This document shows positions 11,911-53,749 of a DNA stretch of 64,000 nucleotides, piece by piece. Each line of letters opens with the position of its first letter. Position 1 is the first letter of the stretch. Source of the stretch: Neoechinorhynchus agilis (Eukaryota; Animalia; Acanthocephala); NCBI GenBank assembly GCA_051530055.1, contig CM121341.1, positions 2,260,638 to 2,324,637 of the forward strand. Direction: 5' to 3'. Position numbers and translations under genes: made by a program. The notes beneath the pieces are model-generated. The model saw only the letters and a list, made by a program, of their open reading frames with translations. It was not told the origin of the DNA and made no database searches.

Positions 11911-12008
11911 ATATTTAATCTAACCAAACATCGTAAGTACCCTCAGTAAACACAAAATAAACCGCTGTTCGTTGATTTAAAGCATGAAATAACGCTGCAG
12001 TGCGTCTC

Positions 12009-26198: not shown

Positions 26199-26708
26199 AA
26201 TCAAAGTGAGAGGGAGTAAATTATTTGGAATGATTGAATTTAGAATCACAAGCTATTAAGGCCACACACCGCAGTGGACTCTGATTGGTTCATCTAGGAA
26301 GCCAATAAGAACACATAATGAAAGAAAAAGCCTACTGTTTTTATGGAAATATTACTAAAATTCCGCCGTTATCTGGGTATTATGCAGAAAAATGCACTAA
26401 GAAAGGGTTTTCCACCATCTACGTAGGAAATATCTTAAGGATATGGCAAATGTGGAAACTACGATTATAAGCAGACTGTCTGGAAAAAAATGCGCATTCA
26501 TTTAACCATCATTAATATCATCAATATAAAATCCTTCCTGATAATCCAATTTTCATGTATTTAAATGGTGCAACAAAATTAATTTTTTAGGTCGGATACT
26601 TCGGCGCACAATGTTGTATCAGTTTACTAAAGGTTTTTAAGTATTCAGAAATAATAAAGTTATGTAGCTTTTTCGCAATGAAAGATGGTTAGCGAAAGCT
26701 ATCTTTAA

Positions 26709-27815
26709 GGCACAAGATTGTTCTTCTGAAATCAATCGGATTCAATAAATTGCTTACAATCTTCCGCCGTCTAAAAAACATGAACAATTCAATGTTCAAA
26801 CAGTAATTTATTGATTCCGATATTTCAGAAACACAATCTCATGATTTTATAAAGGCTGCTTGTAAGTTTTCTAGAGCTTAAATAGTACAAAACTTACAAG
26901 TAACCTTCATTGGCACAAGATTGTTCTTCTGAAATCAATCGGATTCAATAAATTGCTTACAATCTTCCGCCGTCTAAAAACATGAATCAATGTTCAAATC
27001 GTAATTTATTGATTCGATATTTCAGAAACACAATCTCATGTTTTATAAAGGTTGCTTGTAAGTTTTCTAGAGCTTAAATAGTACAAAACTTACAAGTAAC
27101 CTTCAATGGCACAAGATTGTTCTTCTGAAATCAATCGGATTCAATAAATTGCTTACAATCTTCCGCCGTCTAAAAAACATGAACAATTCAATGTTCAAAC
27201 AGTAATTTATTGATTCCGATATTTCAGAAACACAATCTCATGATTTTATAAAGGCTGCTTGTAAGTTTTCTGGAGCTTAAATAGTACAAAACTTACAAGT
27301 AACCTTCAATGGCACAAGATTGTTCTTCTGAAATCAATCGGATTCAATAAATTGCTTACAATCTTCCGCCGTCTAAAAAACATGAACAATTCAATGTTCA
27401 AATCGTAATTTATTGATTCCGATATTTCAGAAACACAATCTCATGATTTTCTAAAGGTTGCTTGTAAGTTTTCTAGAGCTTAAATAGTACAAAACTTACA
27501 AATAACCTTCATTGGCACAAGATTGTTCTTCTGAAATCAATCGGATTCAATAAATTGCTTACAATTTCCGCCATATAAAAAATGGACGATTCAATGCTCA
27601 AAGAGTAATTTATTGATTCCGATATTTTAGAAGCACAATCTCATGATTTTCTAAAGGTTGCTTGTAAGTTTTCTAGAGCTTAAATAGTACAAAACTTACA
27701 AATAACCTTCATTGGCACAAGACTGTTCTTCTGAAATCAATCGGATTCAATAAATTGCTTACAATCTTCCGCCGTCTAAAAAACATGAACAATTCAATGT
27801 TCAAATCGTAATTTA
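26709..27815. repeat. About 203-bp satellite, about 5.5 units, two hairpins per unit
   Basis: ggcacaaga at 26709, 26912, 27108, 27311, 27514, 27714. Confidence 0.95.
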
Positions 27816-27999
27816 TCTGAAATATTTCACTGGTAGAATTAAAAGTCAAATATGCAATGCCCTAAATCACGCCCATTACAATTTCTATCATGAATATCTT
27901 GCGATCCGAGTCTATAATCGCCATATTATTTTTAAATAGGTTTTGATCGAGTTCGTACCGCGTAGTCTAAATTTCCGCCAGTTCGCGTCACGATTCGGA

Positions 28000-30042: not shown

Positions 30043-30164
30043 AAGATTCGTTTTTAAAATATTTATATTTAAATAATTGAATTATACTTAGTAGAAATTG
30101 ATCATTTCTTTCCTGCTGCGCTGCAGATACTTTGGCCGTATCTCTGTGAATCTCTCGCGAGACA

Positions 30165-31593
30165 AACGAGGATTCATGCCCCCACAATCGACGCAATATT
30201 CGTGCCAAGGCAGCTGTATGAGAGGTTCAGTGCCCGTTGCACAGTGTGTTAGTCAATTTGGAAGGGCATACGACACGGTCCCTCGAGATTTGGTGTGGGC
30301 ATTCCTCATGAAGGACATTTTGGATAAGTGGAAGGAATATTTCAACACTCTGCTGAACACTGAGAATGAACGACTGCCTCTAGAGGACGTACATTCAAAT
30401 GTCAATATGACGAGGCCGTAGTCGTACGATGAGGTGGCTGCACAGCTCAAGAAAATGAAGACTGGTAGGAACGCCGGTCCAGATAACATTCCGATCGAGT
30501 TGTTGCGATCCCTCGGAGTCCTCGGAATAAAGTTGCTCACGGGGCCCTTTCAGAAGAGAGATTTGGAATAAAAGATCCCATCGGAATGGTAGGGAAGCAT
30601 ATTGATACTGATCTTCAAAGGCAAAGGAGATGTTCTGTAGCGTAGGAGCTACCGGGAATCAAAATCATGTCTCACACAATGAAACTGTGCGAACGAGTGA
30701 TCGATCACAGGATTAGAGAGAATATCAGAATCAGCGAGGACCAACGAGGATTCATGCCCGCACAATCGACGCAATATTCGTGCCAAGGCAGCTGTATGAG
30801 AGGTTCAGTGCCCGTTGCACAGTGTGTTAGTCAATTTGGAAGGGCATACGACACGGTCCCTCGAGATTTGGTGTGGGCATTCCTCATGAAGGACATTTTG
30901 GATAAGTGGAAGGAATATTTCAACACTCTGCTGAACACTGAGAATGAACGACTGCCTCTAGAGGACGTACATTCAAATGTCAATATGACGAGGCCGTAGT
31001 CGTACGATGAGGTGGCTGCACAGCTCAAGAAAATGAAGACTGGTAGGAACGCCGGTCCAGATAACATTCCGATCGAGTTGTTGCGATCCCTCGGAGTCCT
31101 CGGAATAAAGTTGCTCACGGGGCCCTTTCAGAAGAGAGATTTGGAATAAAAGATCCCATCGGAATGGTAGGGAAGCATATTGATACTGATCTTCAAAGGC
31201 AAAGGAGATGTTCTGTAGCGTAGGAGCTACCGGGGAATCAAACTCATGCCTCACACAATGAAACTGTGCGAACGAGTGATCGATCACAGGATTAGAGAGA
31301 ATATCAGAATCAGCGAGGACCAACGAGGATTCATGCCCGCACAATCGACGCAATATTCGTGCCAAGGCAGCTGTATGAGAGGTTCAGTGCCCGTTGCACA
31401 GTGTGTTAGTCAATTTGGAAGGGCATACGACACGGTCCCTCGAGATTTGGTTTGGGCATTCCTCATGAAGGACATTTTGGATAAGTGGAAGGAATATTTC
31501 AACACTCTGCTGAACACTGAGAATGAACGACTGCCTCTAGAAAACGTACATTCGAATGTCAATATGACGAGGCCGTAGTCGTACGATGAGGTG
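30165..31593 (+). repeat. 578-bp tandem array (about 2.5 copies) of an RTE reverse-transcriptase segment
   Basis: ORF repeats at 30253/30831/31410; unit reads DKWKEYF...LKKMK.G...GPDNIP.E...YRGIK.MSHTMKLCERVIDHR...GFMP...AYDTVPR with stops. Confidence 0.93.
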
Positions 31594-31594
31594 G

Positions 31595-31975: not shown

Positions 31976-32242
31976 GTTTACTGGGTGAAAATTTAAAAAA
32001 TAAGTCGCTTTATCGTTGGACAGTCTTCCGATTTAGGAAGCTCGTCGAAAATATTCAAGGCTTTTGCTTCAACTCAATCGCTTTAAATGATCGTGCTTCT
32101 TAAATTTGACATTTCGGAATTTTTATCTTATGGATCGAATTATACTTTTTGAACACTAAAAATGGGTGTAAACGTTCAGTCTCAATTTGTTAATAAAAGT
32201 GACCGGAAAGTTTTATACTTTATTTGAAGTGCTTTTTGCACA

Positions 32243-33131
32243 TTAAATTCTAGTAATAAGTTCTTGAGAATTTAAAGAATCCATTTCGATCGAATCAGAA
32301 TCGTTCCATTTTTGGAAAATCCGAATTGGTTTTTCATCGGCAAAATCCTTTATTAATGGCTCGAAAGCTTCTATGACTTGTTCCATATTTGAGATATTTT
32401 TTGAAAACGGATCGACAGCAGAATTCGTTCTAAATGTTCTAAATTTTTTGGCGAAAAATTGTCAGCTAAAAAATGGCTAACCTTCTCTGACGCTTTGATC
32501 GCCCAGCAATGAATCCGTCGCCAAATAATCGAAATAAATTCGTTCCCAGGATGAACGTAGCAATTTGCGAAGCCATAACGGAAATAATCGAAATTAAACC
32601 ACATGCAATCGATAAATAAAATGTATAGCAGAATTGATGAGATTTTTCTTTCACAAAAAATACGAAGAATCCCATTCCGAAAGCGTGGCAGGTCACTGAA
32701 AAATAAACGGATTAAACGGAAGGCCGATTTTAAAAATTTACTTACAAGAGATTTGTCCAAGGACCGAGGAAACTTGCAGCCACAAGATCCGCACTCGTCC
32801 TTGGGATACAAAATGAAATACGGCCATAAGAAAAGCCGCAATTTCGAATCCGGCGCTCATAACCAGCAACGTGCCTATTAGTTTTCCTAACGAAAGGAAT
32901 TTTATAAAAGAAACAAGAAGGAAACTTACTTTCAATGAGAAGGAAGTAAATCGGAGGCAAAAGCGATGTCTTATTTCTGTATGAATGGCCGAAGATTCCA
33001 ATGGCGAAATTCGTATTTGGAACTCGCGTCCACGGATGATGGTTGCATATTGAAATCCAGCTTAAAATTGAAGTAACAAAGAACAACATCGCAATTGCGA
33101 AACTCAATGCTTTGAACGTTGTAGGATTCAT
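32243..33131 (-). CDS. Second intact copy of the claudin/PMP22-like gene; exons 33131-32930, 32886-32746, 32695-32482, 32438-32243
   Basis: Same splice sites and stop as 17833-18721, with a few substitutions. Confidence 0.7.
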
Positions 33132-33860
33132 TAGGTGCTATCGATAAATCTGTAGGAGTTTGGGATGGATGCAAGATATTCTTAAGTAACACTCGTTTCA
33201 GACTACAAGCATTTTCCGTCCAAATATGTTTTTCTTATTGTTTGGAGTTTTGAAGGCAAACAAAAAACATTTATTGTTTATTTTTGTTTATAATAAATCT
33301 CATGATGGGTAGAGGTCAACTTTCTCAAAGACCGTTTAAACCGCAAATGTTCATTGCACCAAGAGACTGATCGGAATTTCGCCGCGAGAAGCATCGCAAA
33401 TACCGAAGGATTGGATAAAAGAGATAACCACCTCGAAAATTCCGGTCCTCGGATTTCATAAGCAAAATATCAGATTTTTTCCGTACGTCTTGTTACCAAC
33501 TATCAATTAATTTTGAATCACGGTGAATTTTATCGAATGCACTGAATAATGCTTGATGTTTCAGCTTGGAATCTCCTAAAAAGTATCTTTTATTCTTCTC
33601 TAATTCTCATTGATTCGAAAATTCGACAGATTTATTGAATACCTAAGGTATAAAGTTCGGTGACTTGTACTTCTTTTTATAATAATAACACGTTTATTTG
33701 TGGGAAAGGAAGAAGTAGTTGATCGGAAGAGTGATTTGAGCCCGAGGGTACGATTTCGAAGCACTTGGTTAAGTTAAGGGTAAGACATTTCGAGGAGTAA
33801 AATGCTTGAACCTGAGAAATTTCGTTAGAAGTAATTGAGAGTTGTGCTGAATAAGAAGAG

Positions 33861-34943
33861 TGTTGACATGGTGGATGAACCAAACAGCGGACCAGTTTTT
33901 CAACAAAAACTGTTTTTGTACAACACACACTATTTTATGCCCATTTACGCTAGCCCAATCAATAGCGTACTTACCACATTTCCTCCCCCGCAAATTCCTA
34001 GCCTATTTTGCGGTATTCGTCGTATGGTCGTATAGGAGGCCTCCGGTGACGTTGACTTCTCCTTAAGAAAGGTGTTGCGTGCTCCCGGTCTTCGTTTTTC
34101 TTTAACTTCGGGTTGCACCTCGGCCTGCCCTGATTTCGTGACTTCACCTCCATCTTCCGCATCGAACTCAACCTTCCTTTGAAGTTCTTCCTCTTCAACC
34201 ATTATACTTACTTTATCCTTTTCTTGTTCCCATTCTTCGTAGCCTTCTCTTTGCCTCACGAAATCCCCGTGCGCCCTATTTTGCGTTCCGTTTTTATCCA
34301 CGATTCGATAGGACACCGGTCCTGATCGTTGCTCCACGACTCCCTTTTGCCATTTCCCAGCTCTTCCTTTTTCCACCACACTTCATTGCCTTCCCCAAAC
34401 TCGCAATAACGCCCATCCGGTCTCTGCCTCTGTCTTCGCGCTGTCCTGTCTCGCACTGTTTCCTCTGTATTTGGTCTGATATTGTCGAACACTGTATTCA
34501 TCCTCCTCCCTAACATCATTTCTGCTGGAGCTTTTCCTGTGATTGCATGAGGCGTGTTTCTGTATGTTTGTAGAAATTCCGTAAGTGCCCTTCGAGTATC
34601 CATTCCTTCCCCCTGCCATTCCGCGTCGCTTAAGGGTTCCTATAAATCGTTCTACCAACCCATTCGTTTGTGGGTGGTAAGGACTCGCCTTTATGATCTC
34701 GATCCCATTTTCTTCGCAAAATGCCTTGAACTGTTGTGACATAAATTGAGGCCCGTTATCGCTCACAATTTTCTTTGGAGTCCCGAATCGAGCAAATGTT
34801 TCCCTCTTCCGATCGATCACCATTTCGGATGTTATTTTGCATGTATTGAAGAACCAAACCTCGGGCCACTTACTCCTTGCATCTACGATCGCCAAATACA
34901 TCTTGGAGTTTGTCGGTCCCGCCAAATCGATGTGCACGCGCTG
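33861..34943 (-). mobile_element. Gypsy LTR retrotransposon 3' half: integrase, PPT and 118-bp LTR
   Basis: VHIDLAGP, IVDARSKWPEV, IVSDNGPQF, SPYHPQTNGLVER, YRNTPH, GPVSY; PPT cgggggaggaaa; LTR tgtggtaa...gtcaaca at 33978-33861. Confidence 0.9.
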
Positions 34944-36390
34944 TACGCTATTGATTGTGCTGGCGTAAATGTGCATGTAAAAAAAGTGTGTTGGGCACAC
35001 AGAGTTTTTTGAAATAAAGAAGGATCGCTGTGTGGTTCGTCCACCATGTCAACATCTGGCGACGAGGACAAATGGAAGACATGGATGGAGGGTATCATGG
35101 GACAGCAAAAGGTGTGGATGGAAGAGATGTTCAAAATGGTGTCCAAGACCCAGATCGAACAGAACAATGTGATACGGGGAGCACAGATAACCCCATTCCG
35201 CACTTTCGATTGAGTTGAGAACTGGGCCGAGTACGTAGAACAAGCCGAAGCCCACATGGAAATCAATGGAATCAAAGAAAGCGACGAAGAAAAGCGTAGA
35301 TCCTGTATATTGGCCTGGATGGGTCCAAAGATTTACACAGAGCTAAAGAAGATGGTAGCCGGCCGACCGTTCGACGAAGTCAGCTATGTAGATGTCAAGT
35401 CGCTGATTGACGCTTACGTAGCACAGCCAATGCACCAGATAACGGCGCGCTACCTCTTTAGTACATGCCGTAAAGCAGAAGGACAAACTCACGCCGAGTG
35501 GGCTACAGCACCACGAGGAGCTGCACGAGGATGCGGTTTCTACAACAAGGAAGTTAAGGATGAACGATCAGCGGTCGACGAAAGGATTAAGGATCATATA
35601 ATCGTGGCGACACCCTCGAAAGCTTTAAGAAAAGCTGCGATGCAAGGCAAGGATTCAGCATCATTGGAGGAAGTCTTAAAGATTGCCGAAGCGATCGAGG
35701 TAGCAGAAAAGGCGAGTGAGCTGTTATGTGATTCAAAAAGTAACGAGCGTTCGGATCAAAGAGGAGAGGTCGAGGTTGATCGAATAATAAGAAGTCAAAG
35801 GTTCACAAGGAAATCAGAGGATAAGCGAGTACAAGAACCGAAAGAGAAGTTCGGTAATCGATGTGGAAAGTGCGGATTCGTTCATCGAGATAAAGTTCAA
35901 TGTCCGGCAAGTAGAGGAAAATGTTACAAGTGTAGTATTAGCGGACATTTTGCCCAAATGTGTAGAAAAGCGTGGGTGAGACAAGTAGAAGCGGTAAAAG
36001 GAGTGCAGCCTAGAGAGGATGAGTGGGAACTTAAGAAAGGTTATGGTTGTTATGGGCTAATCTGCACTGCAAATGACGAGGGTAATCGAGCAGAAATAAC
36101 GGCGATGGTCGATGGATGTCAAGTGACAATGAATTTTGATACTGGCGCGGAAGTTAGTATCATCGACGAGGACATGTGGAGTAAGATCGGAAAGCCGAGT
36201 TTGAAAGCGACGAAGCGATTGAAGGCGTTTTGAAGGATCCGAAATCGACTGTCTGGGCAAGTGCAAAGTGAGAATCGAAACAAGAGGGATAAAGAAGAAT
36301 ACAGTGGTGCACGTGGTAAAAGGAACGAAGGGATGTTTATGGGGGATTGGCTGGATAAAGCTGTTTGATATGGAGTTACCCCCTTCAGTG
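34943..36390 (+). mobile_element. Gypsy 5' half: LTR, PBS, gag and protease
   Basis: LTR ends gtcaaca at 35054; PBS tggcgacgagga at 35057-35068 (complementary to a tRNA-Ser-type 3' end); CYKCSISGHFAQMC zinc knuckle; FDTGAEVSII protease motif. Confidence 0.9.
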
Positions 36391-37192: not shown

Positions 37193-37349
37193 AATTTTGT
37201 TAGAATTAAGCGTTAGCAATAAACAATAATCGACGAAAGTTGCTTAGTTTTTATCTATCACTGAAGAAAACGCAAAAAATAATCTAAGTGGTTAAATAGT
37301 TATTCTGCACTTACACGCGTTTTTGGTGGATTGTGTTGCTTAATTTTTT

Positions 37350-38390
37350 AGCTATGAAGACAGAGTTTGTAACCTCGTGGCTCACCTATTGTTCAAGTTC
37401 TGGCTAATCTCATCATGGATCGATGATATATTCTTTATTTGACCCGGTGATGAACAGAGTGCTGATCAGTTCCGGGAACATCTCAACCGCGAGCAAATTC
37501 ACTATGAATAGATGCGATAAAAATGGGAGGTTGCCGTTTCTAGATGTGTTGATTCAGAAAAAAATGGAACACGAATTACTACCTTCGTCTACAGAAAGGT
37601 AACTGAAACAAATAATTGTATAATTTGGAACAGTGCCCATAATAAGAGCACAAAAGTTGGTACATTCCGAGGCTTTCTGCATCGTGCCTACAACATCGGC
37701 AGTTAGGAGTGCCTCGGAGATGAGATCCACAATTTTCAGCAAGTTTGCATCCCCCAAAGATGTTCTTACTTCAGCGCGAGAGCAAGTGGACCGAACGACG
37801 AACAATCAGTCAAACGAAACATTCATAGGACCGAATCGAATGGACCTGTGCATTGGAGTCCCGGAGATGGACCCACAAACCAACTCTTGGCGTAACAGAA
37901 TCTCTATGATAATTAAGAACAGCGGTCTGCCGATAAAACACCAATTTTATTTTCAACCTTCAGTGCTGATAGGAAACCTCTTTTCCCGGAAACTCACCAG
38001 AAGGTGGAAAAGAGGGCTGCTGTCTACAAAGTTTCTTATGGCCACTGCACTAGCAATTACATTGGACAAACAAGCAGGAATCTGAAGACGAGAAACATAA
38101 ACGGTCAAAGATTTAGAAGGTGGTATCCTCGAATGTCGCATTGAACGAGGTACAAACTGGCCAGTGGCCAATTATGACCAGACAATGTTTTTAGCAAGTG
38201 ACCATAATAACTTTCGACGCTTAATTGAGGAAGCCTTCTTAATCAAAGAACAAAAACCGGACATGAATGACTAACGAGATTACAAACTCTTTCTTCATAG
38301 CTAAAAAATGGTACAAAACAATCAACCACGAGCGCGTTGTTCATAATCAAACTGATGATGAGCCCGACGAAGTTCGAAGCGTTTTTAGAC
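37350..38390 (+). mobile_element. Degenerate Penelope-like element (RT C-terminus, GIY-YIG, terminal repeat with hammerhead-like motif)
   Basis: LANLIMD..IDDIF, LPFLDVLI, FVYRK, VYKVSYGHCTSNYIGQTSRNLKTR, EAFLIKEQKPDMN; ctgatgatgagcccgacgaagttcgaagcg at ~38352; terminal-repeat tail resumes at 39295-39345. Confidence 0.85.
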
Positions 38391-39240
38391 AGGCGCTAAC
38401 CAAGTTCCCGTGAATGGCCTCAGACAGTCGATCTGGGACGGACCTCTTGTCGCGAGAGCTCACAGCTCTCTTCTTTCAGGTTCTCGCGATGGGGTCGTCC
38501 GAGCTAGACTGTTGGCAGTTTCAACACGAGAATCTGGGGCGTGGTTGGAGGCTGTTCCTCTGGCATCTGTGGGAACTCTTCTTACTGACGAGGTGACGAG
38601 GATCGCAGTATCCTTAAGACTCGGTCTCCCGATATGCACGCCCCATCGCTGTCGATGTGGGTCTTTGGTTGATGCTTTCGGGCGACACGGTCTCGTCTGC
38701 AGAAGGTCAGCAGGAAGGTTCTCACGCCATTCTGAAATCAATAACGCAATTTCTCGGGCGTTGAGAACGGCGAACTTCCCGAACATCCTGGAACCCGCCC
38801 ACCTCTGCAGACTAGACGGCCGTAGGCCCGATGGAATTTCGGTCTTCCCGTGGCGGGAGGGCAAATGCCTTCTCTGGGACGCCACGTGTGTGGATACCCT
38901 CGCAGCCAGCAACATCCCCTACTCCCTCGAAATCGCCGGTGGTGCCGCCAGTGCAGCGGAAGGGAGGAAGGTACGAAAATATATGCAGCTATCGAGGGCT
39001 CACTATTTTGTCCCCTTTGGGGTAGAGACGTATGGAGCGCTCGGCAGCTCGGCACTCTCTCTGCTCAAGGATCTCTCGAAGAAATTGAGAGGCAACCGGA
39101 GACTCAAGAGCAGGCTTATTTCTTCGACAAAATATCTCGCTGGCAGTACAACGGGGCAATGCTGCCAGCGTGATGGCGACGGTCGAGGAAGGACAAAAGC
39201 TGGAATTTGGTGGGAGGTGGTGAATGTAAAGAAAAGTAAC
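38390..39240 (+). mobile_element. 5'-truncated CRE-clade element with CCHC and RLE endonuclease
   Basis: CRCGSLVDAFGRHGLVC...RHSEIN...EP..L...DGRRPDG...PWREGKCLLWDATCVDT...FVPFGVETYG; frameshift near the end. Confidence 0.9.
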
Positions 39241-39887
39241 CAAATGTGGCTTGTTGAACATTTCATCCGAAGAAGAGATTTACTGGGTGAATGCCTAAAC
39301 AATAATTCTAATCATACAATCCGGTATCTAACGTATCGACATTTTAAAATTTGATTGTTATTGCATTCCAATTTGATTCCTTTATATCCGAAGCATCCGA
39401 GTCGACGAACTTTTTTTTTTAATATTCATGACTCATTTAATAAATTCGGATAAACTTTGTTATCGTTTCAGCGTATTCCTTAAACCCTGTTTTAATTGCG
39501 AAATGGAATTTAAATAAGATTATAAAAACTAGATTGAAGTGACAAAGACCTATACAAAAATAACGTGCGAATGGATTTCAAAAATAATTCCGGTTTCTTA
39601 ATTTCAGCAGTGTAGTATGCCCAATCGATATTATTGGGGAATAAATGCATTGTTTGAACATTTAAAGCTACGTGTGAATTCTGTGAAGACGAGCAGCTGT
39701 CAGAATTATTTGTAGCCCAACCGGAGCTTTTCATCGCTAAAAAATCGCTCTTCTTGAAACAAAAAGCGCAACGATCCTGTAAATCGCAAATAAATATCAA
39801 TGAGATTATAGCGAATCGATGTTTTTTTCAATAAAATTCAATACAATTCATTTTGTTTGGGGATCAAGGGATGAAGTGTTGATTGTA

Positions 39888-42491
39888 TTATTCCGGTTTT
39901 TTGGATTCTGCACTTTTATTATCATCTCGTTCTTGCGATTCCCTAGCCAATCGATCACTCGCTTGAATCGTTGCTGTAGATTTACGGTTTTCCAAATCAT
40001 CCGTTTTATTTGATGGCGCTTCGAGGCTAAATGCTGATTGATGATCAATAAAACGTTCAATGTTATCTTCCTCGGCTCGCGTTACTGCTATAAATTGTGA
40101 AACTGGTGCGGTGAAAGATGAACCAGCTGAAGGATTCGTTATCGATCCAGGCGCCGTGGTTTGTTCAAGTTCAAAACATCGTTGGCAGTAATATAAATAG
40201 CCGCGACGATTCCGGAGTGTTTTTGTAATTTTTTTGCATATGCAACAAAATCGACGCTTGTTTAAGTGCTTGAACGTGGAATCGTTAGGATTCCGACGTT
40301 CTTGCTTATCCGACTTGGTTACTGCCTTTTCCTTTACAGCGATTGGCGGATTCACAGTTTCGGATTTGTCAATTTGTCGACCGACGCTGCTTGCCGCACT
40401 TTGATTGGCCTCGTTTTTAAATTTCCTACAAGTCTCGCATTGACACAATCCATCAGAATCATACATCGATGAGCTTTCGGCGATTCCGGGTTCTGGTACA
40501 ATTGATCCACTGTGCACCATTTCGATCAATTGATTTAAACAGGAATCATTTGCTGGATGTGGCGGCTCAACTTGAGATTGTTTCGGGGATGTTTCCGCAA
40601 TTTCGGCAGTATTCAACCATTCCTCGACTGCTTTTGCGGACAAACTGTAGCAAATTTCGCATATTTCAGTCCCAGGATGCAAAGGTGTTCCTTCGGTGAT
40701 ATTCTCAGCGCAAAGATGGCAGCTTAACTCATCATTCGCTTGCTGAGTTTCGGTATTACCGACAAATTCATTTTCCGGATTTCTCGTCGGAGTTTCACGA
40801 GCTGGTTCGTTTTGCAATGTTTGAACATCAGTTGAACGAGCGTTTTCCGGTGGAAGCTTGGATCCAGGAATGATAGTACCAATGCACTTTTGGCAGAATT
40901 TAAATTGTCCATAGCTGTACCATTCGGTGCTCTCTTTCGCTGAACATTTTGAGCAAGACGAATCATTGCACCGGCGATGTGGATCATACGATTCTTGAAG
41001 ATTTTCATTCGAAGGAACGACGGATCCAATGCATTCTTGGCATATACTCAGATGTCCATAAGTGTACCAGCTTGAGCTTTGATTTGTTCCACAGTAATCG
41101 CAACGTCGATTGCTGGTGGAATGATGATGTTGCGAACTCTCTGGTGCAGGATTTTCATTTGAAGTTAATGCTGGAGCATCACTGAACGTAGGATTCGTCG
41201 CTTGTGTTGGTGCTTGAGCAATATTTTGATTTGAAGCATTCGTTTGCGCTGCTCCCAAAGAAGCGCTTGTTTGTTGCCCAACTGCAGCATGAATGTTTGC
41301 CAATTGTGCCATAACTGAGAATGTACACAAATCCATGCATTTTTCGCAAATCCACAATTCCCCGAACTTTTGCCATCTCGAACTTTGGTTTATCTTACAT
41401 ATAACACAGATTCTGTCATCGTGAGAATTCTGTTGCTGTTCGCGATCAGTGGAACTGTTTCGATTGGGTTGAACTGCCGATGAACGTTGATGTTGATTAA
41501 AGTCCTGGGTTTGTCTATCACGAGACCTTATAAAAACCTTCCTGGCCATTTGAGGTGCACAATTCTTGCACAAAAGAAGATTATAGCAGCGATACCAGGA
41601 AGAGCATCTCATTCTATAGCATCTTTGACAGCTAATTCGCTCATTTGTTGACTGTCGAAACTTTGAAGAACTCCGACGAGCCGATATTTTTTGAGTGTTT
41701 GCATTTGGATCGCGATTACCACCATTTTTTTTATTTGAATCTTCGGCTGTTCTGAAAAGGGCATTTGCACATTTGTTACACAAGAATTTTTCTCTTTTGT
41801 AACACCAGGAAACACTATCATTGGTGCCACAAAGAAGACAAGGTTTTCCTGTTTTGCTTTTAAGCAAACGCGAATGAATGTTTTCTAAGCCGTGTTCTAA
41901 ATCTAAAAATTCATTGACAATTTCAACTCCAAGTATCCCGGCGTTATTGCAATTTGTAGCCTCCCGTCGAATCATGTTGTCAAGCTGTTTGGGAAGACAG
42001 CATTGTTCAATGATTCTTGATGGTTGTTCAGTTCTGGGTACATTTCGTCCAATTAATCCTTGAGCGTTTTGCGTCGCCGTAGAAGCTGCTGTTTGATCAT
42101 TGTTTTGAGCAGTGTCTGAAGATCGATTAACAAAATCAAATAACACTGGAAGGGAAGCAGCGATTATTGGAGCGACTGATCTCATGCTGGCCATAAGTTC
42201 GTTCATCAGGTTCACTTGTGGAGCTGGAACAGTCGCAGGAAACTGGTTTGTAATTCTCGGTGAATCATTGCGCAGGCCAAGAAGGTCGGTCAATTCATTT
42301 TGATTTGCTGGTGGATTGAGTCGACTATCACTTGCATCCCTCGCTCCCATTTGTTGCTCCAAGCTGCTTGTGATATGAGTACTCGCCGGTATGTGAATGT
42401 TTGAAGGATCGACTCTGGAGCCTGGATTTTGTAGCAGGTTTTCCACTTGGTCAGGAAGGCATCGAAGAATGTCATATACTGCGGGATCCAT
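39888..42491 (-). CDS. 867-aa intronless protein with seven CX2CX16CX2C GATA-like zinc fingers
   Basis: Uninterrupted 2.6-kb ORF; seven evenly spaced four-Cys motifs, five with Trp at the GATA position, separated by S/T/N/Q-rich linkers. Confidence 0.85.
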   Translation of the reverse strand: MDPAVYDILRCLPDQVENLLQNPGSRVDPSNIHIPASTHITSSLEQQMGARDASDSRLNPPANQNELTDLLGLRNDSPRITNQFPATVPAPQVNLMNELMASMRSVAPIIAASLPVLFDFVNRSSDTAQNNDQTAASTATQNAQGLIGRNVPRTEQPSRIIEQCCLPKQLDNMIRREATNCNNAGILGVEIVNEFLDLEHGLENIHSRLLKSKTGKPCLLCGTNDSVSWCYKREKFLCNKCANALFRTAEDSNKKNGGNRDPNANTQKISARRSSSKFRQSTNERISCQRCYRMRCSSWYRCYNLLLCKNCAPQMARKVFIRSRDRQTQDFNQHQRSSAVQPNRNSSTDREQQQNSHDDRICVICKINQSSRWQKFGELWICEKCMDLCTFSVMAQLANIHAAVGQQTSASLGAAQTNASNQNIAQAPTQATNPTFSDAPALTSNENPAPESSQHHHSTSNRRCDYCGTNQSSSWYTYGHLSICQECIGSVVPSNENLQESYDPHRRCNDSSCSKCSAKESTEWYSYGQFKFCQKCIGTIIPGSKLPPENARSTDVQTLQNEPARETPTRNPENEFVGNTETQQANDELSCHLCAENITEGTPLHPGTEICEICYSLSAKAVEEWLNTAEIAETSPKQSQVEPPHPANDSCLNQLIEMVHSGSIVPEPGIAESSSMYDSDGLCQCETCRKFKNEANQSAASSVGRQIDKSETVNPPIAVKEKAVTKSDKQERRNPNDSTFKHLNKRRFCCICKKITKTLRNRRGYLYYCQRCFELEQTTAPGSITNPSAGSSFTAPVSQFIAVTRAEEDNIERFIDHQSAFSLEAPSNKTDDLENRKSTATIQASDRLARESQERDDNKSAESKKPE

Positions 42492-43352
42492 TGGTGAAAC
42501 TAAATGTTCGGATTAATGAAGAGAATTTAGAAATTTTATAAAAGTATCGCGTTCTATCTTAACTAAGACGAATGATCCGGGATTTTTCAGAGCGCATATA
42601 TATATACCTATGGCTTAGAAACAATGATTTGACGAATGAGCTTGTTTTGTACACATCGCTCATACAGTCCTATGGGAGGTTCTTGGATGTGTTTTCCATA
42701 ATGGTTTCCCCTTTAGTCATGACTTTCTAACCAGCAAATGTTTTGCAAAACAAAAAACTAATAATATTGTAAATTAACGGACGTAAAAGAACATAGAAAG
42801 TTAGAACTTTTGAAGGCCGGTTATGTTCGTTTAAGAACTTAAAATACTACCTTCTTGAACAGCTTGCTTTCCAGCTCACAACGTTCTGAAATACAAAATA
42901 TTATTTGCTTTGGATATTATCCTTGTGAAATACTACTTGATTCTCCAGCCGCACGTTCGATAAAAATATTGTTTGTTTTTTGAACAACATGCAAATATTT
43001 TTCGATTGAAACTGTATTCTATAATACATTTTTTAGCGGAATAATAAATTTCCTTTAAATTTAATACAGGTGTTTGTTTTACATGAGATTAGCTGTAAAG
43101 CGCAAATGCCGATTTAATGCAATGCTTTTCGGGTTTTTTGTACGACAAACTTTTGTGTATTTGTATCAAAATTTGAATATCACGGAACGATTTTTTGAAC
43201 TATTTTTGCGTACCATGTATTATCCTTGATTTAAAAATAAGAGATTGAGGCTCAACGGAAGGAACAATCGTTGCTTGTAACGGTGCTGTGATCTCATTGG
43301 CGGCCGAAAAGTATTTCATGCTTCATGCGCCAATGATATTTCTACTAAATCA

Positions 43353-43830
43353 TCAACTGAGCGTAGTTTCAGTAAACGAAAATATAAATAGTTTATACTG
43401 TTTTGGGGCGATGGGAAACTCAATAAGACCAAATAAATAGCTAATGCGAAGCCGTAATGCTTTCTTACAGGAAGGTAGTTTCAAATAAAATCCGTTCGAG
43501 ACAATTTTCATTTTATTTTTCGTTTCTTGCCTATGTCTCAAGCGAGTTACGATGCACGCCATAAAACTAATGATAATCAAAACAGACAATACAATTGCAC
43601 CAATAATCAATATCCAATTGGTGCTTCTTGGCACCGCTTTTCGGGATGCAATGTTTTTAGACATTATTGAATCATCTGCTAGACGAGTTGAAGCTATCGT
43701 TGATTCTGTAGTCGACGACGTTGATCTTTCAGTTGTTGCAGTCTTAAATGTAATTGGCGCTTTTGTTGCTGTTGTAAACAATTCGACAGCATCTAAACAA
43801 ACAAAAGATTCATTGACTTTCAACGCTTCT
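43353..43830 (-). CDS. C-terminal part of a type I membrane protein (Thr/Ser stalk, TM, basic tail); 5' exons not identified
   Basis: TTATKAPITFKTATTERSTSSTTES, then WILIIGAIVLSVLIIISFMACIV, then RLRHR. Confidence 0.55.
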
Positions 43831-44419
43831 AAGATTATACATCCACTTCAGGTAATAAAAGATATGAATCGTTGTTAATGGAATTTGACGAACAGTCTGG
43901 CCAAAAATTAAAGGCAATTAAAAATTCTTTATGTCAGCGAAGATTAAAAAAGATACGATAAATTAATAAAATAAAAATGCGATGTAAATTAAGCTTTGTT
44001 AAAGCATATTAATTCTCCTTTTTTTCGAAAATCAAAAATGACCAGAAACGGTGGTGAATTCCGCAGTCATTGCTCGTTATTTTGAAAGTGATTAGGGTTT
44101 TCAGTTTTTATGTATTAATGTATGACGCTATATTTTATCGGTTAGATAAAAAATTATTGTAAGAGGAACCAATTCCACGGATGTTTCAATTAAACGCTTA
44201 TTTGTAAGTTGGTTTGAATACAAAAATGTTAAAAAATTTTGAATATTCGCTCGGCCAGTGGCACAAAACAACGTGGACATAAAATCGATATAAGAAATTA
44301 AAGCATTCAAGTTTATTTTAGTAGGTGACGCTGCTCAGTCCCATGAAGATGCATTGGCACGCTTAGTCGACTAATTTGCAGGGAGAAAGTTGATTCCGAA
44401 AGCAATGGAGTTATTTTTC

Positions 44420-45959: not shown

Positions 45960-47290
45960 CAGCCTTACAAGTCCTCAAACAGGCACAAATCAGGTCTCGG
46001 GGCACGGTAAGACACTATGCAACGGACAATGCTTCTCATTAAATTTTTCATAGCACGAAGATAGCGTCAATTGTGCTTCTACCTGGCATAAAGCCGCGCT
46101 GGTCTTCGCTGATTTGGATCTCCTCCCAAATCCTATTGTCAACCATTCGCTCCCCAATTTCATTGTGTGGGACATCACCTTGATGTCCTACACAATTCCC
46201 AAGATGATTTTGGCTTCCCGAAGGATAACTTCAGCCGTCTCATCCCACCAGGTTTCTACTTAGACTACGTCCTCGCTTAGTTTCTGGGGGAGCACAATCA
46301 CAATCTTTTCTTTGAGGGTAGGATCTTTTAGCTTCCACCACTTGATGTTTGCCTTTTACCCTAATCCTGAGGTCGGCCACGAGTAATCTATGTTGCATCG
46401 CACACTCTTGACATTCCAGACTTCGCCCCACTTCGCTATCGGGTACAAAATGAAATTGATTTGATCTTCCACCACTTGAGTATGTGTGTAGGTGCCGTGG
46501 GGCTTTTTTGAAATTAAGTATTCGAAATACGCAACTCCAACGCTGTTGTATAATCCAACAGTCTTACATCCTCGGCGTTCCTTGATCCTACACTGTGTCC
46601 TCCATGAATTCGCTCGTATTCATCTCTCGGTCCAACGGGCCCGTTGAAATCGCCAGTTATCACATATCTTTCCCCTATAGTCCTTGTCAATTCAGATAGA
46701 TCCAGCCAAAATTCATCTTTCTCCTCCTCGCTGCAATCGACCTGCGGGGCGTATGCAGCCACTACTGTCGTGATTTCACCACTCTCGTTTCTCCTCACCA
46801 CCAAAACTCGATCACTTGTTCTTTTCACTTCCATTACATCGTCGACTAGGTCTTTAGCGATTACAATACTGACCCCATTTCTACCACTTGTTCCGCCACT
46901 ATAAATTAGTTTATAACCTTCTCCAACTTCTTTAGCCTTGCGTATTTTCCATCGTAGTTCTTCTATCCCGAGTATCTGAATTTTTCTTCTGCTCATCAAA
47001 TCGACCACTTCTCGACTTCTCCCTGTCATAAAACCAATTCTTATTTTTATGACGACTCGTTTCTTTAGCCAGGCCCGTCGCTTACCCGGTAACCCTAATT
47101 CATTTTTCGCATCCTCCGGGCGCCGAGTCTGCGCGTCGCATAAGGGGTATGCCCTTGTCAGATCGTTCGAAATTAAAGAACTTGACATTGGCATAGATAG
47201 TTTTGGCACAGGGTTTTAAGGCCGGATGCCCTTCCTGACGTCAACCCTCCCCATTTGTCCGGGCTTGGGACCGGCACCGAGTTTCCCCGA
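45960..47290 (-). mobile_element. Degenerate RTE-clade LINE (APE domain plus RT fragment)
   Basis: EELRWK, GYKLIYSG...RNGVSIVI, AYAPQV, GDFNG, MSHTMKL. Confidence 0.88.
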
Positions 47291-47640: not shown

Positions 47641-48025
47641 ATAATAAAGGAATCTTTAACCGGGATTACGCTCACCAACTTTAAACGTTGATGCTCATCG
47701 TTTTTTACGGCGAAAATTCCTATACAATGACCATCTACAAAATTAGGACCCATTCGATAAACTTCTTTGAATTTAGAAATAAAACTCTAAGTTACATCAT
47801 CGTAGTCTGGGCAAAAAATGGCACTATTTTGGTGAGGTATTTACCTAAAAAGTTTCGTTTTCTCATAAAAGAGCGAGTACACAACGCGAATAATACAGAG
47901 GAATGTCACACGAACTCGAATATTTAAAAACTTACAAGCAGTAAGTATTGGCGAGCAGCCAAAGCCCAATGACGACCAAAGATGCGATTGCATCTCAGAG
48001 GGCACATTGAAGAAATGAAAGATAA

Positions 48026-48950
48026 TTAAACTCTCGAATCGTTGTGATTGACATAAAATGCGGTGTTCTTCACTGAAATCAAAAATTTGGAAGCTGCGGT
48101 CGCAAAAATTAAAATGCATTTGGCAAGTAATTTGAAAAGGATTTCTCGAAGAAATTGAGAGGCAACCGGAGACTCAAGAGCAGGCGTATTCCTTCGACAA
48201 AATATCTCGCTGGCAGTACAACGAGGCAATGCTGCCAGCGTGATGGCGACGGTCGAGGAAGGACAAAAGCTGGAATTTGCCGGGAGGTGGTGAGTGTGTT
48301 AATTGTCGAGAAATGAAGATTGATTGAATTTCAAAAAAAATTCTTCGATTAAACTCTCGAATCGTTGTGATTGGCATAAAATGCGGTGTTCTTTACTGAA
48401 ATCAAAAAAATTTGGAAGCTGCGGTCGCAAAGATTAAAATGCATTTGGCAAGTAATTTGAAAAGGATTTCTCGAAGAAATTGAGAGAGGCAACCGGAGAC
48501 TCAAGAGCAGGCGTATTCCTTCGACAAAATATCTCGCTGGCAGTACAACGAGGCAATGCTGCCAGCGTGATGGCGACGGTCGAGGAAGGACAGAAGCTGG
48601 AATTGGCCGGGAGGTGGTGAGTGTGTTAATTGTCGAGAAATGAAGATTGATTGAATTTCAAAAAAATTCTTCGATTAAACTCTCGAATCGTTGTGATTGG
48701 CATAAAATGCGGTGTTCTTTACTGAAATCAAAAAAATTTGGAAGCTGCGGTCGCAAAGATTAAAATGCATTTGGCAAGTAATTTGAAAAGGATTTCTCGA
48801 AGAAATTGAGAGAGGCAACCGGAGACTCAAGAGCAGGCGTATTCCTTCGACAAAATATCTCGCTGGCAGTACAACGAGGCAATGCTGCCAGCGTGATGGC
48901 GACGGTCGAGGAAGGAGAGAAGCTAAGATTTGGCGGGAGGTGGTGAGTGT
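48026..48950 (+). repeat. 325-bp tandem array (about 3 copies) of a CRE 3' end plus flank
   Basis: aaggatttctcgaagaaattg at ~48137, ~48462, ~48787; tail matches the reverse complement of 61555-61760. Confidence 0.92.
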
Positions 48951-49874
48951 GTTTCAAACGGATTGTTAACCTTTACTAAAATGTTATTAATGAAATTAAC
49001 GACATTAAAAAAATATACAAAACAATTATGAAAGTTTCATGTTGTGTTGCAGTCTCAGGCTTAGTTTCTTTTTCGAGAAACCACTTTCTTTAAAAACGAT
49101 ACGAATTTGCACCCTCTTTGGAATCGCGCTCGGAAAACTCCCTTTCCCATTTTTTTAAAAGCGCTCACCCATCGGAATTGATGCTTTTCTGCTCGCTTTA
49201 AAGTGTACGCTTCGTGTTTATGTATTAAAAGAAACAAAATTGTGCTTGGTTATTGTTTTTGAAAACGCAGGGATCTAAGTCAATTTCTCTTAAACGTGAA
49301 ATGAACGAAGTCCGGGAAAAAGGCTCGCTTATAAGAACTTAAAACAATGTCACACTTAAAAATATGAAGATGAAACTTCTGGATTCATTTTCAAGTTCGA
49401 TTTGCAAGAAATAAAGGTACTGTGAAATTAAAAAATTGCTTTAAGAGAACAGCCATAAAAATAAACGATCAATGCAACCATCGACGGAAATTGTTCATCA
49501 ACTCTGTATCGAAATTTACCGTTGGCGTGTGCAATTATTAGTCATTTTAGAAGATTTAATTTCGAAAAACACCAAAATTGTAATTGCATTTACGATAGGT
49601 CACTGGTCCGCTAAAGTAATTCCAACCAATAATAATCTGAATTTTCCTCTTATCACTTACAAAAACCTACTAAAAAATTTGTTTAATTTTTTGAATCAAA
49701 TGTGTTTTAAAAATTTCACAGCGGTGTCTATCACAACCAGCAGGATTTGCTAATGCTAAATATGTACTTTTGTCATGATTTTTGAATTTTTTTATTTTTT
49801 TATTAATATTTATAATTTTGATGTTTCAAAAACCTCCTAGAGGTCCACACCCGGTAAATTATTATTTATTATAG

Positions 49875-50030
49875 ATTTTTCGAACATTGTCGGGTTCATC
49901 ATCAGCTTGCTAGTTGTCGTCTTTTAATAACTTACAGCGGTTCGAAACGTTTTTTAATAAAAATTATTTACCGAGTGGAGACCTAAACAATAATTCTTAT
50001 CATATAGCCCGGCACTTGACATATCCATAT
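49875..50030. mobile_element. Penelope-terminal-repeat palindrome copy, partly deleted
   Basis: Same spacer as 11350-11383 (ttattaaaagacga on the minus strand), flanked by gggttcatcatcag and ggttcgaaacgttt, ending in the terminal repeat. Confidence 0.7.
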
Positions 50031-50390
50031 TCTATTGATGTTTTTGATAAAAAAATAACGACATAATCCGTACTTTTACAATTTAGAAGGAACGTTAATT
50101 AGCCTGAAAAAAAAACAAAAAAAACAAGGCAATAAAGTGCAATTGGTTTCGCTGGGGAAAACTACAATTTAGATTCCAGGAAATGAAAGATTAAAAAAAT
50201 GATCAAGTGCTTACATACGAATGCATCTTTTAAAACGTTCTCAAAAAACTAAAGTAGCTTTAAAAATAAAAACAGAATACATCACTAATTCTCGATAAAT
50301 AGTGCATTTTACATAGATACTAAACTCAATTAAGGAACTTAAAGAAACGGTCAATATTCTAGAAAAAAGCTGTCGATAGTACGAATATAT

Positions 50391-53300
50391 TTAGCATTGT
50401 ACGTCGATTCCAAATCCGAGTTTATGATCTCCTTGATTGATATTTAAACTATCCAAATTGGTTGACATTGTAAGCGCCACTCCAGGCCTCAATGCATGGG
50501 TACATGAAATGCCGATATGTCTTAAATTCGCGATTTTGATTTTAAGGGAGAGAGATGGGTCCACTTCATAACAAGCAGCAAAATACAGATTTGTCTTGTC
50601 TGAATTCGGATTCCATTTCATTTGAACACCAGTTTGAAGTCTCGGATTCACCGAATGAATGAGAGATGCACAAACATCGGATTGATTCTCAAGACTTGTT
50701 CTCACGCTAAAGTCCGATGCATCGAACCCAATGCAGAGACTGCTTTTTTTAAAATTGGATTTGGTTAAATTGTATGAAAACGAGCAACCAAATAACCAGA
50801 GATTCGAACTACCGCGAGAAAATCTACTAGTCACTATGGAATACGTAAGCAAAGGTTCCCATTGTCGTTGGTTCAATTCGAATCCGGCTTGGGCGTTAAT
50901 TATATCGCTGATATAAGACGTCCTGATCGATCCAGCTCGTGAGCCAGTCGCTGGAGAAAATGATGCTTTTAAAACACAAATTGCCACGAGTGAACGATTA
51001 TAGAAAATAGAGAAAATACAAAATGAATTTTAAAAAGTACAAAGAAACTATTTATACAAAAACTTTATTAACCATAAATCAATAAAAGGGCATAGGAAAA
51101 TAGAGAAACTAAAGTTTTATCGATAACAGGACGACAAATTAAAACAAAATTGTTTAAAATCATTTAGAAAATAATAACTATTTAAGATATAACAAAGAGA
51201 CTCCGATAACATCTTGGCTATACCCACAATGAACTTTAAAAAGAACTAAGAAATCATTTATACAAAGACTACTACTAAAAAATCAATACAGAAGTCAAGA
51301 GGAAAATATTCGATCCGTCTGTCTACATTTTGCAACTTCTCCCAAACAAAGTTGGAAAATGGTTCGTCGCCACAACAAAGGGCAACCGTACAGTTAATTA
51401 TTTTTTATAAGAGAATCAGCGATTAAGAAAGGGAATTATGCATCCTCCAGGCAACGACCGATAAAGACGTTTCGCCGTTTCCATCGGAACTTTTATAATT
51501 TTTTAAAGTGTTAACTGATAATCAAAAAATATTAATAATTAATTTTTTCATCCCTATGCAAACAACTATTTTTATGAGAGAATCAGCGATTAAGAAAGGG
51601 AATTATGCATCCTCCAGGCAACGACCGATAAAGACGTTTCGCCGTTTCCATCGGAACTTTTATAATTTTTTAAAGTGTTAACTGATAATCAAAAAATATT
51701 AATAATTAATTTTTTCATCCCTATGCAGACAACTATTTTTATGAGAGAATCAGCGATTAAGAAAGGGAATTATGCATCCTCCAGGCAACGACCGATAAAG
51801 ACGTTTCGCCGTTTCCATCGGAACTTTTATAATTTTTTAAAGTGTTAACTGATAATCAAAAAATATTAATAATTAATTTTTTCATCCCTATGCAAACAAC
51901 TATTTTTATGAGAGAATCAGCGATTAAGAAAGGGAATGATGCATCCTCCAGGCAACGAACGATAAAGACGTTTCGCCGTTTCCATCGGAACTTTTATAAT
52001 TTCTTAAAGTGTTAACTGATAATCAAAAAATATTAATAATTAATTTTTTTTCATCCCTATGCAAACAACTATTTTTTATGAGAGAATCAGCGATTAAGAA
52101 AGGGAATGATGCATCCTCCAGGCAACGACCGATAAAGACGTTTCGCCGTTTCCATCGGAACTTTTATAAATTTTTAACGTGTTCATTGATAATAAAAAAA
52201 TATTAATAATTAATTTTTTTCATCCCTATGCAAACAACTATTTTTTATGAGAGAATCAGCGATTAAGAAAGGGAATGATGCATCCTCCAGGCAACGACCG
52301 ATAAAGACGTTTCGCCGTTTCCATCGGAACTTTTATAAATTTTTAACGTGTTCATTGATAATCAAAAAATATTAATAATTAATTTTTTTATCCCTATGCA
52401 AACAACTATTTTTTATGAGAGAATCAGCGATTAAGAAAGGGAATTATGCATCCTCCAGGCAACGAACGATAAAGACGTTTCGCCGTTTCCATCGGAACTT
52501 TTATAATTTTTTAAAGTGTTAACTGATAATCAAAAAATATTAATAATTTAAAATTTTTATTTCCGTGCAGCGAGACATTTTAGAGAATCTGTCATGGAAT
52601 AAAGGAATGATGCATCCTCGAGAAAATGAAGGATATGAACGTTTCGCCGTTACCATCGGAACTTTCATAAATGGGAAAAAATGATTTTTCGATAAAAAAA
52701 ATTCGTGCCTTTTCGATAAAAAGGTAAACGATAGCAATATGTTTCGTTTAAAAATTCCAATAAAGTACAATATTTAAGAAATCCTCACGAAATCAAGCTT
52801 GAACGAAAGATATATTTTTTGATATAACAATCATACAAAATCTTGGAGGAAAACTTTATCGGGCAAAAAATGCTTAGCCGTCCTCGTCCTCAATTGTAGC
52901 CTGGATGCTTGTCGTGTTGCCCCGTCAACATTTAAGCAAAAAAATGCATAAAAAAATTAAGAAAAACATTTTTAACAATCAACAATTTGTAAACATTTAA
53001 AGGACAAATTGCGGTAAACAAAGAACAACAACTCATAAAACACCGACTACGAAAAATCATAAAAAAATCCTTTTAAAAATTCTAATAGAAAACAAAAAGC
53101 AGATATAAAGAAAAAACCTCGCTTAAAGTGGCAACTTGAGTTGCAAGTTCAAAGACAAGCCACGGAGAGATAGAATATTTTCGTTTACAATAAGCTCTGA
53201 GGACAAAACATTATCAGTGTCCCATTTCTCAGAGAAAGTAAAGCCTTCGAAGTGAACAAAAGATGAAGATTTTACATGTATATTTTAAGATTTTATATTA

Positions 53301-53583
53301 CCTTTATCAGCTGTAACAAATCGCGTCTCTAAACCACCGATAGCCTTTTGAGTATCCATAAAAAGTTTCCCGGATGTAACAAACTTTACGCCGCTACTCG
53401 ATGTTGAAGTTACATTGAGCTTTATAACATTCGACACTTGAATTTCGTCCATGAAAAACGGCAGATAAAAGTTAATGGACACTTACGATAGCCAATATCG
53501 AACAAGCGGCTAACCGCGTAGTTTAAGCGAGAATACGGAGGCGGCCGACGAATATTACGGCTCGAAATCAATGTTGAACTCAT
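50391..53583 (-). CDS. VDAC: Second VDAC copy with the same exon structure and the same in-frame TAA (53123-53125)
   Basis: ATG at 53581-53583; last-exon protein identical to 10022-10618. Confidence 0.85.
51410..52670 (-). repeat. About 169-bp satellite, about 7.5 units
   Basis: catcggaact at ~51482, 51649, 51816, 51983, 52153, 52322, 52490, 52654. Confidence 0.95.
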
Positions 53584-53749
53584 TAGAAATAAAAATTAAT
53601 TGCCGAATCAAAAGAAGATCTGGAAATCATGAACTCGACGATTGTCTGAGTACCTTTCGAAGTGAAAGCGCTCTGTGAAGGTTTCCTTGGAGAAAGAGAA
53701 AGCTTTCCTCTGTCGTCAGAAGCACAAGGAAGATGAATACGCGATTTAT

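Follow-up and report, generated by a model that had tools for sequence, protein, structure and literature searches.

A lineage-restricted family of proteins with arrays of predicted GATA/MTA-like treble-clef fingers in the acanthocephalan Neoechinorhynchus agilis

Positions 39888–42491 (minus strand) of a 64,000-nucleotide stretch of the Neoechinorhynchus agilis genome (contig CM121341.1, positions 2,260,638–2,324,637; hereafter the window) encode a protein with seven four-cysteine fingers of identical CX2CX16CX2C spacing. N. agilis is an eoacanthocephalan gut parasite of fish. Judged from sequence comparison and structure prediction, the protein belongs to a lineage-restricted family built on GATA/MTA-like treble-clef Cys4 fingers and is not demonstrable as a member of the GATA family. 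The gene is a genuine protein-coding gene of a family under selection. What is new is the family and its many-finger layout; the fold is known already. We consider the best overall explanation, at a probability of about 0.5, to be a lineage-restricted treble-clef multi-finger protein that would act in the nucleus as a multivalent binder of nucleic acid or chromatin. Motifs, family, selection pattern and the failed GATA test are established and the fold class is supported by modelling, whereas the nuclear site and the binding are what we infer.

The finger array and its paralogues

The frame at 39888–42491 is an uninterrupted single exon of 867 codons including the stop, by far the longest open reading frame (ORF) of the window. 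Its translation holds exactly seven CX2CX16CX2C units, which start at residues 218, 288, 362, 464, 513, 591 and 749 and account for 28 of the 42 cysteines of the protein (about 5% Cys; isoelectric point 6.7; no signal peptide). The units lie 25–134 residues apart, on linkers with a high content of Ser, Asn and Gln that are modelled with low confidence. When the protein sequence was shuffled 20,000 times, the mean number of such motifs was 0.004 and the maximum 1. A six-frame scan of the window detected only one further CX2CX16CX2C motif, at 35862 (plus strand), in a retroelement gag ORF with a CCHC knuckle. An earlier note, made from the sequence of the window alone, had listed seven fingers, the first five with a Trp eight residues after the second cysteine; the motifs and their sequences are exactly as given there, and the Trp is present at +8 in fingers 1–5, the position being occupied by Thr in finger 6 and Arg in finger 7. 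A feature beyond that note is a degenerate eighth finger at residues 669–688.

The ORF is contained exactly, as the main exon, in the annotated gene model ACOME3_000439 (P0014, 935 amino acids) of N. agilis CM121341.1; the corresponding locus L005 (CM121341.1:2,290,525–2,314,301) equals window positions 29888–53664 at 100% identity. The window protein is 97% identical to an N. agilis hypothetical protein. At least 15 annotated models (P0001–P0015) make up the family, which falls into two subfamilies forming two clusters on two chromosomes:

Subfamily A, CM121341.1: eight models, namely ACOME3_000207, 000218, 000219, 000225, 000226, 000439 and 000604 plus the fragment P0004
Subfamily B, CM121342.1: ACOME3_006228 to 006262 and 006487; 28% identical to the window protein

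The X16 spacing is found in all 33 distinct fingers of both subfamilies. Finger number varies: the window copy and ACOME3_000604 have seven, subfamily B has five, and ACOME3_000207 (P0002), a single-exon gene which lost fingers 1, 4 and 6 by in-frame deletions, has four. The parts of the window protein are as follows:

41937–42491, minus strand: N-terminal region, residues 1–185, without fingers; helices predicted with low confidence
41769–41840, minus strand: finger 1, CLLCGTNDSVSWCYKREKFLCNKC, residues 218–241; pairs with finger 1 of subfamily B; deleted in P0002
41559–41630, minus strand: finger 2, CQRCYRMRCSSWYRCYNLLLCKNC, residues 288–311; net charge +8, followed by the basic tail APQMARKVFIRSRDR
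41337–41408, minus strand: finger 3, CVICKINQSSRWQKFGELWICEKC, residues 362–385; followed by a hydrophobic helix
41031–41102, minus strand: finger 4, CDYCGTNQSSSWYTYGHLSICQEC, residues 464–487; the most MTA1-like finger, modelled with AlphaFold2; deleted in P0002
40884–40955, minus strand: finger 5, CSKCSAKESTEWYSYGQFKFCQKC, residues 513–536; tail C-x-x-C-I-G-x-[IV]-[IV]-P as in finger 4
40650–40721, minus strand: finger 6, CHLCAENITEGTPLHPGTEICEIC, residues 591–614; atypical, without Trp, net charge −7
40428–40487, minus strand: degenerate eighth finger, GIAESSSMYDSDGLCQCETC, residues 669–688; VPEP in place of the first CX2C
40176–40247, minus strand: finger 7, CCICKKITKTLRNRRGYLYYCQRC, residues 749–772; net charge +8, without Trp; pairs with finger 5 of subfamily B

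In the alignment of the subfamilies, A1 pairs with B1, A2 with B2 and A7 with B5, and the degenerate finger, identical in all subfamily-A copies, aligns with the intact finger 4 of subfamily B. Between the subfamilies, conservation is highest in finger 2 (50% identity outside the cysteines). The start methionine and a motif ahead of finger 1, NAG[IV][LI]G[VL]E[IM]VN, are also common to the window protein and subfamily B. Finger 6 is missing from P0002 and subfamily B and lacks a hairpin in the full-length structural model. Fingers A3, A4 and A5 are mutual closest relatives (32% identity outside the cysteines); this kinship, together with the tail common to A4 and A5, fits internal duplication. 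The suggestion in the earlier note that the array arose by finger amplification is thus borne out by internal gain and loss, by the closeness of fingers 3, 4 and 5 and by paralogues with seven, five or four fingers.

When 5.8 billion proteins were searched by a word index, with the window protein and again with a profile of the two subfamilies, no homologue from outside N. agilis was retrieved; HMMER, run exhaustively over 1.84 billion cluster representatives, likewise returned N. agilis proteins only. The description of the protein as unrecognised, for which a homologue search had been recommended, therefore holds: it has neither a Pfam hit nor a homologue outside this species. No identifiers mapping to ACOME3_000439 occur in the N. 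agilis transcriptome paper and its supplement, zinc-finger expansions go unmentioned in a rotiferan genome paper, and a literature search for poly-GATA-finger proteins was uninformative. As far as sequences can tell, this is a young, clustered family with gain and loss of copies, recorded from N. agilis alone.

Three single-exon frames of the family are open: 867 codons in two copies that are 3% apart, and 636 codons in a 28%-identical copy of subfamily B. Ratios of nonsynonymous to synonymous substitution rates (dN/dS, Nei–Gojobori) of whole genes are 0.4–0.6. They differ between parts of the protein when the window copy is compared with ACOME3_000207 (P0002):

Fingers: dN/dS 0.28
Linkers: dN/dS 0.94
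N-terminal 185 residues: dN/dS 0.76
C-terminal non-finger part: dN/dS 0.49

The contrast between fingers and linkers (Fisher test, P = 0.016) indicates that selection acts on the fingers and that the linkers evolve neutrally.

Predicted fold and relation to GATA and MTA fingers

Pfam assigned no domain to the whole finger protein, GATA, BAH, ELM2 and SANT included, in agreement with the earlier note, which had seen no SANT, ELM2 or BAH motif. That note had called the fingers GATA-like and proposed a search with the Pfam GATA profile. PF00320 (IPR000679) matched neither the whole protein nor any of the seven 50-residue finger segments at E-values up to 10. Classical GATA proteins (PF00320; GATA1–6, AreA, plant GATAs) share with the window protein the Trp at +8 and a hydrophobic residue preceding the third cysteine, and have the treble-clef fold class that is predicted for its fingers; fingers 1–5 align with the strand Trp of GATA, and fingers 6 and 7 are without it. 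They differ in their spacing, CX2CX17–20CX2C as opposed to X16 in all seven window fingers, and in the DNA-contact motifs TPLWRR and CNACGLY, which are absent here; C-N-x-C is found only in finger 1 and a basic tail only in finger 2. Because of the missing profile match, the X16 spacing and the missing DNA-contact motifs, GATA membership fails. GATA factors are known with one finger or two, as against seven here.

The full-length AlphaFold2 model (pLDDT, the predicted local distance difference test, 32) was too poor for a fold search; it shows two strands and then a helix at fingers 1–5 and 7. Finger 4 was modelled on its own from an alignment of 24 family fingers, with a mean pLDDT of 75.6 and a core of 85–89. 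Strands are predicted at residues 22–25 and 28–31 of this model, and a helix at 32–38 that begins at the third cysteine. In the model the topology is that of a treble clef and not of a zinc ribbon. The structure prediction recommended in the earlier note hence gave a zinc knuckle, a β-hairpin and a helix, the fold class that includes GATA. In a Foldseek search of the PDB with the finger 4 model, the leading neighbours were the ClpX zinc-binding domain (ZBD), LIM, uS14, AreA, GATA3, GATA1, GATA4 and AtGATA18, nearly all of them treble-clef structures, with query-normalised TM-scores mostly of 0.41–0.58; no match reached an E-value of 0.001, and GATA was not separated from ClpX ZBD, LIM and uS14. 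Foldseek returned no significant match among viral structures either, and a viral origin is unsupported.

Profile comparison with hhalign was controlled with 150 column shuffles in which the cysteines were kept fixed. Against classical GATA fingers, the finger profile scored 16.1 (P 0.002, probability 13%); two of 150 shuffles scored as high, and the alignment needs a one-residue gap past the Trp strand. Against residues 392–436 of MTA1, identical letter for letter to PDB 7ao8_D, the score was 20.0 (P 1.6e-4, probability 50%), a value attained by none of the 150 shuffles. Finger 4 and the MTA1 finger are 40% identical over 25 columns. In fingers 4 and 5 the corresponding stretch reads [QE]-S-[ST]-x-W-Y-[TS]-Y-G, the MTA motif being C-x2-C-x-T-x-Q-S-x-x-W-Y-x-W-G with X17. 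MTA1/2/3 of the NuRD co-repressor and RERE/EGL-27 likewise have a Cys4 finger, a single one, with Q-S-x-x-W-Y-x-[WY]-G after the first CX2C, and MTA1 resembles finger 4 also in being without the GATA DNA-contact motifs. By contrast, MTA proteins have one X17 finger within a BAH-ELM2-SANT architecture, and the window protein has seven X16 fingers and no other recognisable domain. In sequence, then, the resemblance to the MTA1 finger beyond the cysteines appears real but weak, too weak to establish common descent. The likeness of CGTNQSSSWYTYG to MTA fingers, pointed out in the earlier note, stands to that extent, above all Cys-fixed shuffles and yet faint; of its GATA label, the modelled fold class and this faint signature remain, and the family membership is lost on profile, spacing and DNA-contact motifs.

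A true GATA-family transcription factor, reading WGATAR sites with seven GATA fingers, is extremely unlikely on these data. Such a factor would account for four-cysteine fingers with Trp at +8, for the end of finger 1 (LCNKC), which resembles LCNAC of GATA, for GATA structures among the best fold matches and for an hhalign score above 148 of 150 shuffles. It is opposed by the lack of any PF00320 match up to E 10, by X16 in place of 17–18 residues, by an hhalign probability of 13%, by the missing TPLWRR, CNACGLY and basic tail, and by the equally good fit of ClpX ZBD, LIM and uS14 to the finger 4 model.

Several other zinc-binding families came up in the searches. A per-finger Pfam scan gave sub-threshold matches only, to double zinc ribbon, B-box, RING, FYVE and ArfGap. 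Two-zinc families (RING, B-box, LIM, FYVE and PHD) matched fingers below threshold at E 0.01–0.04; these need eight ligands per compact domain, and the units here have four cysteines and are widely spaced, so that RING, LIM, B-box, FYVE and PHD were rejected. ArfGAP was rejected as well. Its finger also has X16, and the spacing therefore fits, but finger 4 alone matches PF01412, and its hit, at E 0.05 and 14 bits, stays below the cut-off of 28.7 bits and covers no more than profile positions 10–41; the domain of about 117 residues with its catalytic Arg is not found. Among all PDB sequences, the finger profiles matched the uS14 finger best (E 0.004), a weak hit driven by the cysteine framework; halves of IAP RING domains, DksA, ClpX and GATA-2/3/4 followed at E 0.008–9.5, and PDB GATA chains gave E 0.28–9.5 against the finger profiles. 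Phmmer matches to PDB sequences were equally weak and cysteine-framework-driven. ClpX ZBD, LIM halves, uS14/eS29 and ArfGAP thus score the same as GATA or slightly above it in structure or profile; they differ from the window protein in that ClpX and uS14 are single fingers in unrelated proteins, LIM has two zinc sites per domain and ArfGAP needs its 117-residue domain.

Proposed function and alternatives

We propose that independent Cys4 modules are strung together in the protein and that each probably holds one zinc ion and is formed by a zinc knuckle at the first CX2C, a β-hairpin with a conserved Trp or Tyr and a helix starting from the second CX2C, an arrangement that corresponds to the treble clef of GATA and MTA fingers. 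It would reside in the nucleus and bind nucleic acid or chromatin multivalently. Net charge divides the array: fingers 2 and 7 carry +8 each, and fingers 3–6 are neutral to acidic. The basic fingers 2 and 7, which are conserved between the subfamilies, may contact nucleic acid, and the neutral or acidic, MTA-like fingers 3–6 may serve contacts with proteins or histones. Gain and loss of fingers among paralogues could then retune the binding target.

It is possible, though not probable, that the fingers are protein- or RNA-binding modules rather than DNA-binding ones, and that the protein is a scaffold in a chromatin, ribonucleoprotein or ubiquitin pathway, comparable to the GATA-like fingers of MTA, ATRX, FAM60A or p66. 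The nearest sequence likeness, that to the MTA1 finger, the neutral or acidic character of fingers 3–6 and the sub-threshold matches to the RNA-binding finger of uS14, to ClpX ZBD and to RING halves are all consistent with such a role. The MTA1 finger is not known to bind DNA in a sequence-specific manner. A scaffold is harder to reconcile with the absence of a partner domain and with the strongly basic charge of the two most conserved fingers, which suits nucleic-acid binding; moreover, RING, LIM and B-box need eight ligands in one domain, and the fingers here are 25–134 residues apart.

Several observations weigh against a nuclear multi-finger binder as proposed above. No statistically significant structural or sequence match was obtained in any of the searches, so that the fold rests on an AlphaFold model computed from paralogous fingers. 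Most fingers are without the basic residues that make the DNA contacts of classical GATA. No transcript-derived copy was found among the collections searched; only NCBI gene models carry the proteins. Several copies (L002a, P0003, P0005, P0013 and P0015) are truncated or contain a stop, and in view of the high overall dN/dS and of such broken copies the family could be loosely constrained.

The family invites comparison with the KRAB-C2H2 proteins of vertebrates and the ZAD-C2H2 proteins of insects, which are rapidly expanding families, also lineage-restricted and clustered, with varying finger numbers, constrained fingers and free linkers. There are differences: their fingers are C2H2 and not Cys4 treble clefs, their linker is the seven-residue TGEKP type as opposed to 25–134 residues here, and the N. 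agilis family is much smaller and has no effector domain. By a tentative functional analogy one may speculate, at rather long odds, that the family is an acanthocephalan counterpart of KRAB and ZAD proteins, that is, a lineage-born, clustered and rapidly diversifying set of sequence-specific nucleic-acid binders which uses GATA/MTA-like Cys4 fingers; it might then track the transposable elements and satellites that abound in this genome. We know of GATA-like treble-clef fingers only singly or in pairs. If the comparison held, no array of many GATA-type treble-clef fingers would have been known before that of the window protein, and seven fingers on flexible linkers, gained and lost among paralogues, would mean that this fold can be used combinatorially, as C2H2 is. 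Hardly any acanthocephalan gene has, to our knowledge, been studied functionally. The family offers a clear example of lineage restriction combined with constrained zinc fingers in a phylum for which the loss of many conserved gene regulators has been reported (PMC12256650). The practical value is at present modest, and the fold is a familiar one.

Duplicated unit, 5' exon and surroundings

The gene is part of a larger duplicated segment, to which the annotation adds an upstream exon:

39278–44252, no strand assigned: duplicated unit of about 5 kb, consisting of the gene with flanks of about 1.8 kb on the upstream and about 0.6 kb on the downstream side
43470–43664, minus strand: annotated 5' exon of P0014, spanning about 65 codons and predicted to encode a transmembrane helix

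At the ACOME3_000604 locus (L001) the unit recurs with 96.9% identity, and partial copies of it, some head-to-head, lie near 000207 and 000218. Terminal repeats bounding the unit were not found, nor was a transposase, reverse transcriptase or integrase linked to it across the copies; a transposable-element origin was rejected as principal explanation on these grounds. Inverted head-to-head pairs of finger units occur at L002 (3706–6762 with 8065–12061) and L003 (2401–6391 with 7926–12340). Each pair includes one member that is truncated or has a stop, for example an in-frame stop past finger 1 at L002 3706–4659.

That the family is merely selfish or decaying amplified sequence, spread by segmental or inverted duplication or as a mobile element and of little or no use to the host, strikes us as unlikely. 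Many copies, several of them truncated or interrupted, the head-to-head partial copies at L002 and L003, the intronless gene, a linker dN/dS near 1 and surroundings crowded with retroelement remains, satellites and inverted duplications would all be expected of such an amplicon. The structure of the unit, without terminal repeats and linked transposition genes, speaks against it, as do the three open single-exon frames of 636–867 codons, the purifying selection on the fingers and the X16 spacing kept in every one of the 33 fingers.

A further alternative takes the annotated 935-residue model at face value: the exon at 43470–43664 would provide an N-terminal membrane anchor and the fingers would be cytosolic. 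A canonical GT-AG intron, ending shortly before the ATG at 42491, links the exon to the finger ORF without a change of frame. The exon codes for a hydrophobic helix of 23 residues, after which basic residues follow; it lies inside a 156-codon ORF (43353–43823) in which a Ser/Thr-rich stretch precedes the helix. It is, however, unused in the gene model for the 97%-identical copy, where the protein starts with MDPAV; the exon has five changes in 65 amino acids relative to that copy, and it is poorly conserved at other paralogue loci, being split into separate 49–72% matches at L002 and L003. Upstream of the subfamily-B genes, whose start methionine is conserved, the exon is absent, and a stop lies about 30 codons ahead of that methionine. 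From these comparisons the annotated exon appears doubtful, and a membrane-anchored protein quite improbable.

The neighbourhood of the gene is ordinary eukaryotic DNA of 32–48% G+C with EF-hand genes, a CNOT1 exon, retroelement remnants of both the long terminal repeat (LTR) and non-LTR type, satellites and inverted duplications. A large inverted duplication (4583–11019 and 49989–56776; 95–97% identity), whose arms are about 39 kb apart, flanks the finger gene; its arms contain satellites with periods of about 247 bp (4583–7775; 53732–56776) and about 167 bp (8838–9613; 51396–52672). An inverted repeat pair of 1.1 kb with 99% identity (17676–18776 and 32188–33289) has a centre that differs from that of the larger duplication.

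Relative to the ACOME3_000604 copy, a retroelement fragment (38387–39277) is inserted directly 3' of the finger gene. Its ORF (38410–39354) has no Pfam hit; a 95% copy lies at 61599–62448, and more diverged copies are found in L001. An element of about 1 kb at 37315–38337, bounded by 64-nt inverted repeats (83% complementary), recurs in L001, L002 and L003 and for this reason looks like a miniature inverted-repeat transposable element. Remnants of an integrase core (34383–35000, minus strand), of a gag with CCHC knuckle and an aspartyl protease (35256–36233, plus strand) and of an endonuclease of the long interspersed nuclear element type (46514–47209, minus strand) complete the set of mobile-element traces. 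Tandem repeat blocks of 94–99% identity occupy 26703–27820, 30157–31594 and 48025–48953, with periods of about 200, 577 and 323 nt. Host gene exons were recognised at 63179–63988 (minus strand), 12009–12932 (minus strand) and 59357–60055 (plus strand); apart from two ORFs for EF-hand proteins, they represent the C-terminal Not1 domain of CNOT1 (E 5e-51).

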